Positions 47,755-48,278 of a DNA stretch of 64,000 bases are shown here, one piece after another. The first letter of the stretch is position 1. Each line of letters starts with the position of its first letter. The notes beneath the pieces were generated by a model. That model ran no database searches, had not been told where the DNA came from, and worked only from the letters and a program-made list of their open reading frames with translations. The position numbers and the translations under genes are program-made. This stretch comes from Macrostomum lignano (Eukaryota): the NCBI GenBank assembly GCA_002269645.1, contig NIVC01001281.1:231302-295301 (forward strand). Direction: 5' to 3'.

Positions 47755-47780
47755 AGTCTTTGTTCCCCCGGGCACTGCAG
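47755..47780 (+). promoter_or_regulatory. Candidate SL trans-splice acceptor of DTD2
   Basis: TCTTTGTTCCCCCGGGCACTGCAG directly before the Met-less ORF, phase 0. Confidence 0.62.
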
Positions 47781-48278
47781 GCCGCAGCCCGCCTGCTCAT
47801 CCAGCGCTGCCGCTCGGCAAGCCTCCGGCTCGATCCGCCGCCGGCTGCTGCTGAGCAGCTCCAGGCTGAGCAGCCTCAGGTCGAGCAGCTCAGCATCGGC
47901 CGGGGCCTCCTGGTCTTCGTCTGCTTCTTGCGCGACGCCACCGAGTCCACCGTTGACGACATCGCCAAGCAGGTCTGCGGCCTCCGCCTGCTGCCAGCTG
48001 GCAATGCCGAGTCGCTGACGACGGTGCGCGACCTGCCGGGCGACCTGCTGCTCATCCCGCACTTCACCCTGGGCGGCAAGCCGAAGTCCGGCCGCTTGCA
48101 GTACCACTCGGTGATTGACAAGCAGCGCGGAGGCCAGCTGTTCACCCTGCTGCGGGACCGCCTGACCCAGCAGCTGCGGGACACCGGCGGCACGGTTGTT
48201 GCGGGACAGTACGGTGCCACCCAGCGGCTGGTCTGTGACTGCCAGGATGGCCCGTTCTCCCATGTGCTGGAGCTCTGA
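47781..48278 (+). CDS. DTD2: D-aminoacyl-tRNA deacylase 2 (ATD-like), single coding exon, 165 codons with no Met
   Basis: [59 protein letters not shown] (Gly-Pro motif) align from memory with vertebrate DTD2. Starts at acceptor GCACTGCAG|GCC in phase 0. Confidence 0.88.

Follow-up and report, generated by a model that had tools for sequence, protein, structure and literature searches.

A Macrostomum lignano DTD2 gene without a genomic start codon and the probable donation of its AUG by the spliced leader

All spliced leaders (SLs) reported from flatworms end in AUG (PMC12582326). As summarized in PMC9851317, Cheng et al. (2006, J Biol Chem) reported that this AUG can serve as the initiator codon in Schistosoma; according to the same summary, the AUG of the SL lies in frame in 28% of the trans-spliced mRNAs of S. 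mansoni, and over 40 cDNAs depend on it. A dedicated tool for the resulting "slORFs" exists (PMC9851317). Macrostomum lignano has a single SL of 35 nt, CGGTCTCTTACTGCGAAGACTCAATTTATTGCATG, that terminates in ATG (PMC8629364) and whose 3' end reads ...TTATTGCATG (PMC8629364; PMC10468722). A Macrostomum genome paper describes the final ATG of the SL as a translation start codon and states that trimming it creates annotation problems (PMC10468722). Approximately 30 to 39% of M. lignano genes are trans-spliced, with conserved genes enriched among them (PMC8629364; PMC5730564), and the top motif at 9551 SL acceptor sites of this species is [T/C]TNCAG (PMC8629364). The Mlig_3_7 annotation is based on public RNA-seq data, among them SRP082513 and SRR2682326; TBONE trims and maps the SL-containing reads and cuts the transcripts at the peaks, and the ORFs are called by TransDecoder (PMC5730564). 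The portions of the published papers on M. lignano trans-splicing that were available to us (Wudarski et al. 2017; Ustyantsev and Berezikov 2021) contain no account of genes that depend on the SL ATG.

The window analyzed in this study is a 64,000-nt stretch of contig NIVC01001281.1 of the M. lignano assembly Mlig_3_7 (GCA_002269645.1; PMC5730564), which agrees with the flatworm origin assumed in the original prediction. It contains a gene for D-aminoacyl-tRNA deacylase 2 (DTD2, or ATD) that lacks a genome-encoded start codon. We infer, with a probability of approximately 0.75, that the start codon of DTD2 is donated by the SL through a junction at position 47781 and initiation at the SL AUG. 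The donation of AUG by the SL has been an established mechanism in flatworms since 2006, and the M. lignano gene, read in this way, is a further and ordinary example that leaves the known mechanism unchanged. Similar to the Schistosoma mRNAs that use the SL AUG, the M. lignano case combines an SL ending in AUG, an acceptor that is in phase, the absence of a stop codon between the two, and a recipient exon without a start of its own. It differs from them in that the organism is a free-living macrostomorph, the gene is DTD2, the conserved domain follows the SL AUG with zero spacing, and the use of the AUG is something that we infer. The annotated 5' end of DTD2 lies at a [T/C]TNCAG site, as do those of the M. 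lignano genes that TBONE annotates as trans-spliced (Wudarski et al. 2017; Ustyantsev and Berezikov 2021), and DTD2, which is conserved in human, belongs to the class reported to be enriched among these genes. With repeats adjusted for, DTD2 lies approximately 1.08 kb from the upstream gene, just over the 1-kb operon threshold of those papers.

The DTD2 ORF on the plus strand (47781-48278) contains 0 ATG across 165 sense codons and is closed by a TGA at 48276-48278, as read from the translation of 47691-48290 and from the ORF list. The frame is open from the TAG at 47691-47693 to this TGA, and the 29-codon extension ahead of the exon (VLVEF...PRALQ, 47694-47780) also lacks Met; i.e., the window copy has no in-frame genome-encoded ATG for DTD2 anywhere in 47694-48275. 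The original prediction for this stretch had stated both that the 165-codon ORF is free of in-frame ATGs and that the upstream stretch back to the TAG is free of them, and the translation bears out both statements. The sequence at the junction is ...tctttgttcccccgggcaCTGCAG/GCC GCA GCC CGC, where the CAG ends at 47780 and the first GCC starts at 47781 in phase 0. The earliest ATG of the annotated DTD2 exon in any frame is located at 48004, where it opens an out-of-frame ORF of 4 codons, and the earliest in-frame ATG is located at 48309, past the stop. At typical Met frequencies, 165 residues without an internal Met have a chance of approximately 2.5 to 8%. The notable feature of DTD2 is the absent start codon, and the absent internal Met is only mildly unusual. 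The ORF and its in-frame upstream extension differ in composition, with GC3 values of 0.87 and 0.55 and overall GC contents of 0.69 and 0.44, respectively. The coordinates of the features are collected in Table 1.

Table 1. Features in and around the DTD2 locus of the window (strand "." where no strand is assigned)
Feature	Position	Strand	Remarks
XRN1-like exons	about 2600-7800	-	
P450 exon	26180-27289	-	
Pirin	from 39610		
40-bp minisatellite (AATCTAGCCTATCATGGGTGCAGGAATAGAATGGATTGCT), 25 copies	41984-42996	.	upstream of GNPNAT1; ends ~20 nt before candidate acceptor
Putative outron or intergenic spacer, GNPNAT1 stop to acceptor	45900-47780	+	64 ATGs
40-bp minisatellite (AATCTAGCCTATCATGGGTGCAGGAATAGAATGGATTGCT), 20 copies	46668-47465	.	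inside putative outron, upstream of DTD2
In-frame TAG	47691-47693	+	closes upstream extension (translation); no in-frame ATG between TAG and exon
Genomic ATG, 32 nt upstream of exon	47749-47751	+	out of frame in window copy, inside 95-aa ORF 47731-48018; in frame in second copy
Pyrimidine-rich tract tctttgttccccc	47757-47769	+	precedes acceptor; inter-copy 1-nt indel at 3' end, between 47769 and 47770
Trans-splice acceptor CTGCAG (putative)	47775-47780	+	fits [T/C]TNCAG; same in second copy
DTD2/ATD coding exon	47781-48278	+	165 codons and TGA; 166 aa with SL AUG, ending ...SHVLEL
Annotated mature DTD2 mRNA, SL trimmed	47781-48396	+	GCA_002269645.1; 5' end is first base past AG; 3' end within 24-bp minisatellite
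24-bp minisatellite, ~19 copies	48256-48709	.	makes up DTD2 3' UTR
SDR	from 49438		

Judging from its deduced protein, the locus is a single-exon DTD2/ATD gene of M. lignano. The Pfam family Tyr_Deacylase (PF02580) matches residues 4-164 with its entire profile (positions 1-144 of 144, E = 5.4e-24), and the best relative in the structural database is mouse DTD2/ATD (5xaq), in which residues 8-167 of 168 align with residues 1-164 of the query (E = 1.2e-18). Canonical DTD structures score 2e-6 or weaker, which places the window protein closer to ATD, and the named homologues are animal DTD2 proteins from Styela, Penaeus, and Schistocephalus. The similarity to DTD2 starts right after the acceptor in phase 0, as had been predicted. 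All of the 11 aligned orthologues have Met and at least six residues ahead of the conserved R/K-x-V-x-Q-x-C strand, and the M. lignano protein has four residues before this strand when the SL Met is included. Some homologues align from their own residue 2 or 3 in the exhaustive HMMER search. The N-terminus of the M. lignano protein thus lacks nothing but a Met.

ATD/DTD2 is a tRNA deacylase specific to Animalia (Kuncha et al. 2018; 5xaq); its length, its Gly-Pro motif, and the H-V-L-E-L at its C-terminus are retained in the M. lignano protein. On the other hand, the signature motifs of ATD, -PQATL- and -TNGPYTH- (Kuncha et al. 2018), are not present as such in the window protein. They are replaced by PHFTL (residues 93-97) and QDGPFSH (residues 154-161), respectively, which retain the Pro, Thr-Leu, Gly-Pro, and His of the signatures. 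Arg9 (IQRC) faces Gln16 of the mouse enzyme, which corresponds to the position of Arg7 in DTD, and Thr147 (YGATQ) faces the invariant Arg151 of the mouse enzyme. This arginine arrangement looks DTD-like and could affect the conformation of the Gly-Pro motif and chiral selectivity. One further homologue and the orthologue from Schistocephalus share PHF[CT]L, which therefore looks like a lineage variant. A 15-bp in-frame tandem repeat (GCTGAGCAGCTCCAG, 2.8 copies) is located at 47850-47891 in the CDS; the residues that it encodes are inserted between the first and second conserved blocks and have no counterpart in the mouse protein.

The deposited annotation (GCA_002269645.1) already lists a Met-less product of 165 aa beginning with AAARL, with copies on NIVC01001281.1 and NIVC01000108.1. 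The annotated gene, at 10001-10616 of locus L002 in our numbering, was placed in window coordinates with an offset of +37780. Because the frame is open upstream to 47694, a 5'-partial ORF that starts at AAARL requires a transcript that begins at 47779-47781. The annotated mRNA of the second copy starts at the base equivalent to 47781 and encodes an identical Met-less 165-aa product; because the copies are near-identical and reads multi-map to them, they are not independent on the point where the mRNA starts. Of the five or six genes annotated nearby, DTD2 alone has an mRNA that begins directly after an AG. An annotated 5' end need not be an SL site; the model of the neighboring GNPNAT1 is Met-less yet does not begin after an AG. 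Taken together, the annotated 5' end of DTD2, the use of SL reads by TBONE, and the acceptor motif indirectly but strongly suggest that SL reads map to the site at 47781. The SL sequence was absent from the 64-kb window in a search with up to 3 mismatches, and no Rfam family was found in the window at the gathering threshold; the SL RNA gene sits elsewhere in the genome.

The mechanism that we propose would proceed as follows. The primary transcript of DTD2 would begin upstream of the exon, either at a promoter of its own or by read-through from GNPNAT1, and its outron would be removed by SL trans-splicing at CTGCAG/G (47780/47781). The 35-nt SL would contribute the cap and the complete 5' UTR, and its final three bases would serve as the initiator AUG. 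The expected junction of the SL and the exon is ...TTATTGCATG/GCCGCAGCCCGC... (also written TTATTGCATG/GCCGCAGCCCGCCTGCTC), and the genomic, unspliced reading across 47780/47781 is ...GGGCACTGCAG/GCCGCAGCC. The SL AUG shares the frame of the DTD2 ORF (AUG/GCC GCA GCC...), which is open to 48275 with no stop between, and the context of the AUG has a T at -3, which is weak, and a G at +4. With the AUG directly before GCC GCA GCC in phase 0, the product would be the 166-aa protein M-AAARLLIQ... that the original prediction had put forward; the phase of the junction and the open frame agree with it, and ribosomes would start at the SL AUG on the DTD2 mRNA. A transcript of the window copy, as assembled, that escaped trans-splicing would contain no AUG able to yield the protein. 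The M-prefixed 166-aa protein and two SL-read-through versions of it were absent from a collection of 15 billion proteins in an exact look-up.

The second genomic copy provides a comparison on both sides of the acceptor. The two copies show 1 synonymous difference in the 498-nt CDS, whereas the upstream 314 nt contain 17 substitutions as well as indels of 16 nt and 1 nt (Fisher p = 8.6e-7 against the CDS). A near-identical CDS next to a diverged flank speaks against a pseudogene and puts the edge of the coding region at the acceptor or close to it, and the ORF, to judge from this pattern, is under purifying selection. The 1-nt indel is located 12 nt upstream of the acceptor, where the window reads CCCCC-GGG and the second copy reads CCCCCTGGG, with an extra T. 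Because of this indel, an ATG at -33 of the second copy is in frame with the exon, with no stop before it. The original prediction had made translation depend entirely on trans-splicing; this part stands for the window copy as assembled, but the second copy has this in-frame genomic ATG 33 nt before its acceptor. Three readings of this ATG are possible, namely the current decay of an ancestral genomic start whose role the SL has taken over, an indel introduced by assembly beside a homopolymer run in one of the copies, and coincidence. The 66 nt before the acceptor have 0 inter-copy substitutions, and the divergence further upstream is approximately 6%. At this rate, the chance of a substitution-free stretch is 0.007 for 80 nt and approximately 0.02 (0.94^66) for 66 nt, and some constraint on the 66-nt stretch is possible.

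If the genomic ATG at 47749-47751 were the true start, the window copy would be short one base at its C5/G3 run, owing either to a frameshift specific to this copy or to an error of the assembly; the protein would have 176 aa, and its mRNA would not be trans-spliced at 47781. The in-frame position of this ATG in NIVC01000108.1, with no stop ahead of the exon, and the stretch from -66 to -1, which is substitution-free against approximately 6% further upstream, are in line with such a start. The 11-residue extension would match the N-terminal lengths of the orthologues, and a UniProt model, presumably ML2-based, uses another register, which indicates that the run is indel-prone in assemblies. 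However, both copies are annotated with an mRNA that begins downstream of the ATG and with a 165-aa product, and the extended protein is absent from the protein collection. In addition, 4 of the extension's 10 codons have A or T at the third position, compared with 13% in the CDS (p = 0.03), an in-frame ATG within the 20-codon open extension is expected by chance at approximately 27%, and signals of the branch point and the pyrimidine tract can account for the 66 conserved nt. We consider initiation at this ATG unlikely. The comparison of the copies also bears on the view that DTD2 is an intronless retrocopy or a pseudogene in decay, its start codon simply lost. A single exon between minisatellites, the lack of an ATG, and the deviations from the ATD signatures (PHFTL, QDGPFSH, and Thr at the position of mouse Arg151) could be read in this way; however, the ORF of 165 codons is intact, 1 synonymous change in 498 nt stands against a flank divergence of approximately 6%, and the GC3 bias is strong. 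The gene is, moreover, included in a transcript-based annotation, the protein collection contains no other DTD2 copy of the M. lignano genome, and PHF[CT]L is common to other flatworm-type orthologues, all of which makes decay a very improbable explanation.

A start codon could also be brought in by a short upstream exon that carries an ATG and is cis-spliced to the same acceptor, in which case the annotation would have dropped the exon on cutting the transcript at the SL site. The sharing of an acceptor by trans- and cis-splicing has been reported for parasitic flatworms (PMC12582326). Two weak candidates are found in the spacer, i.e., a phase-0 ATG at 47531 (...GCA/GTAACC; MLRNLSA, with a 229-nt intron), which is present in both copies, and the ATG/GTTTGG at 46551, which the original prediction had pointed out and which is indeed present with a poor donor. 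The scan of 45900-47780 detected only such weak, non-consensus donors, and it found 0 ATG-bearing exons that end in phase 0 at a GT[AG]AG donor, the form typical of M. lignano (PMC8629364). The mini-exon at 47531 differs between the copies at 2 of 21 nt, with a change of Leu to Pro, and it therefore looks unconstrained, in a neutral-like manner. Because the protein requires nothing beyond Met, and because the RNA-seq-guided annotation has no upstream exon in either copy, cis-splicing of such an exon seems quite improbable to us. Initiation at a near-cognate codon would dispense with AUG altogether, and in-frame codons of this type are present, namely CTG at 47775 on an unspliced transcript and CTG at 47793 or ATC at 47799 on the mature mRNA. 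A scanning ribosome would, however, reach the SL AUG before 47793, a transcript that retains the outron has dozens of upstream ATGs (64 in 1.9 kb), and the annotated processing removes the CTG at 47775; we give this start hardly any credence.

The closest matches in the exhaustive HMMER search are two M. lignano entries of UniProt, A0A1I8FD51 and A0A1I8FLR7, which are frame-shifted chimeras that fuse GNPNAT1, the outron, and DTD2, and DTD2 and the downstream SDR, respectively. We attribute both entries to ML2, an older assembly rich in indels. A reading of the chimeras as polycistronic transcripts was rejected; they are gene models with frame errors and with no contig recorded and, hence, are not RNA evidence. 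The fusion of DTD2 in these models most likely results from the missing start codon, and the two entries are unsuitable as DTD2 references. The main consequence of start codon donation by the SL would be for annotation, in which such genes are deposited as 5'-partial (here 165 aa without Met); the addition of the SL ATG at the step of ORF calling would mend models of this kind. The DTD2 case would also extend the list of SL-AUG-dependent genes to a free-living, early-branching flatworm and to a conserved enzyme of translation quality control. The locus is easily testable, as M. lignano has working transgenesis.

The gene directly upstream, GNPNAT1 (43013-43202 and 45493-45899, plus strand), shows a comparable arrangement. 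Homology to residues 4-182 of human GNPNAT1 starts at DEEFLFDP (approximately 43064), and the first in-frame ATG is located at 43155. The annotated product of 192 aa fits a Met-less start at 43031 (57 + 1 + 1 + 133 = 192), and this annotated 5' end lies 12 nt downstream of a candidate acceptor and does not follow an AG. The candidate is a phase-0 CTCCAG at 43018/43019, which would give an SL Met followed by an in-frame protein, and GNPNAT1 may, on these features, be a second gene that depends on the SL AUG. Each of these adjacent genes has a phase-0 [T/C]TNCAG and no in-frame ATG before its conserved N-terminus. We put forward only tentatively that a sizeable, hitherto undescribed class of conserved M. 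lignano genes has lost the genomic start and is obligately initiated at the SL AUG, in which case the indel at DTD2, which switches an upstream ATG into and out of frame between the copies, may be start-codon decay in progress. If this is true, coding capacity would reside only in trans-spliced transcripts, and trans-splicing would gate the expression of these genes.

The window is packed with minisatellites of 14- to 53-bp units that fill introns and spacers (49 TRF rows with a score of at least 200), and the GNPNAT1 intron (43203-45492) consists almost wholly of an 18-bp repeat. The 40-bp unit is the only unit that was seen twice among the arrays of the window, with one array directly upstream of each Met-less gene. 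The first unit of the 24-bp minisatellite comprises the last seven codons of DTD2 and the stop (TCC CAT GTG CTG GAG CTC TGA). The 24-bp array is longer in the second copy, where it runs from 10478 to beyond 11300 of locus L001, and the annotated mRNA 3' ends of both copies are located inside the array.
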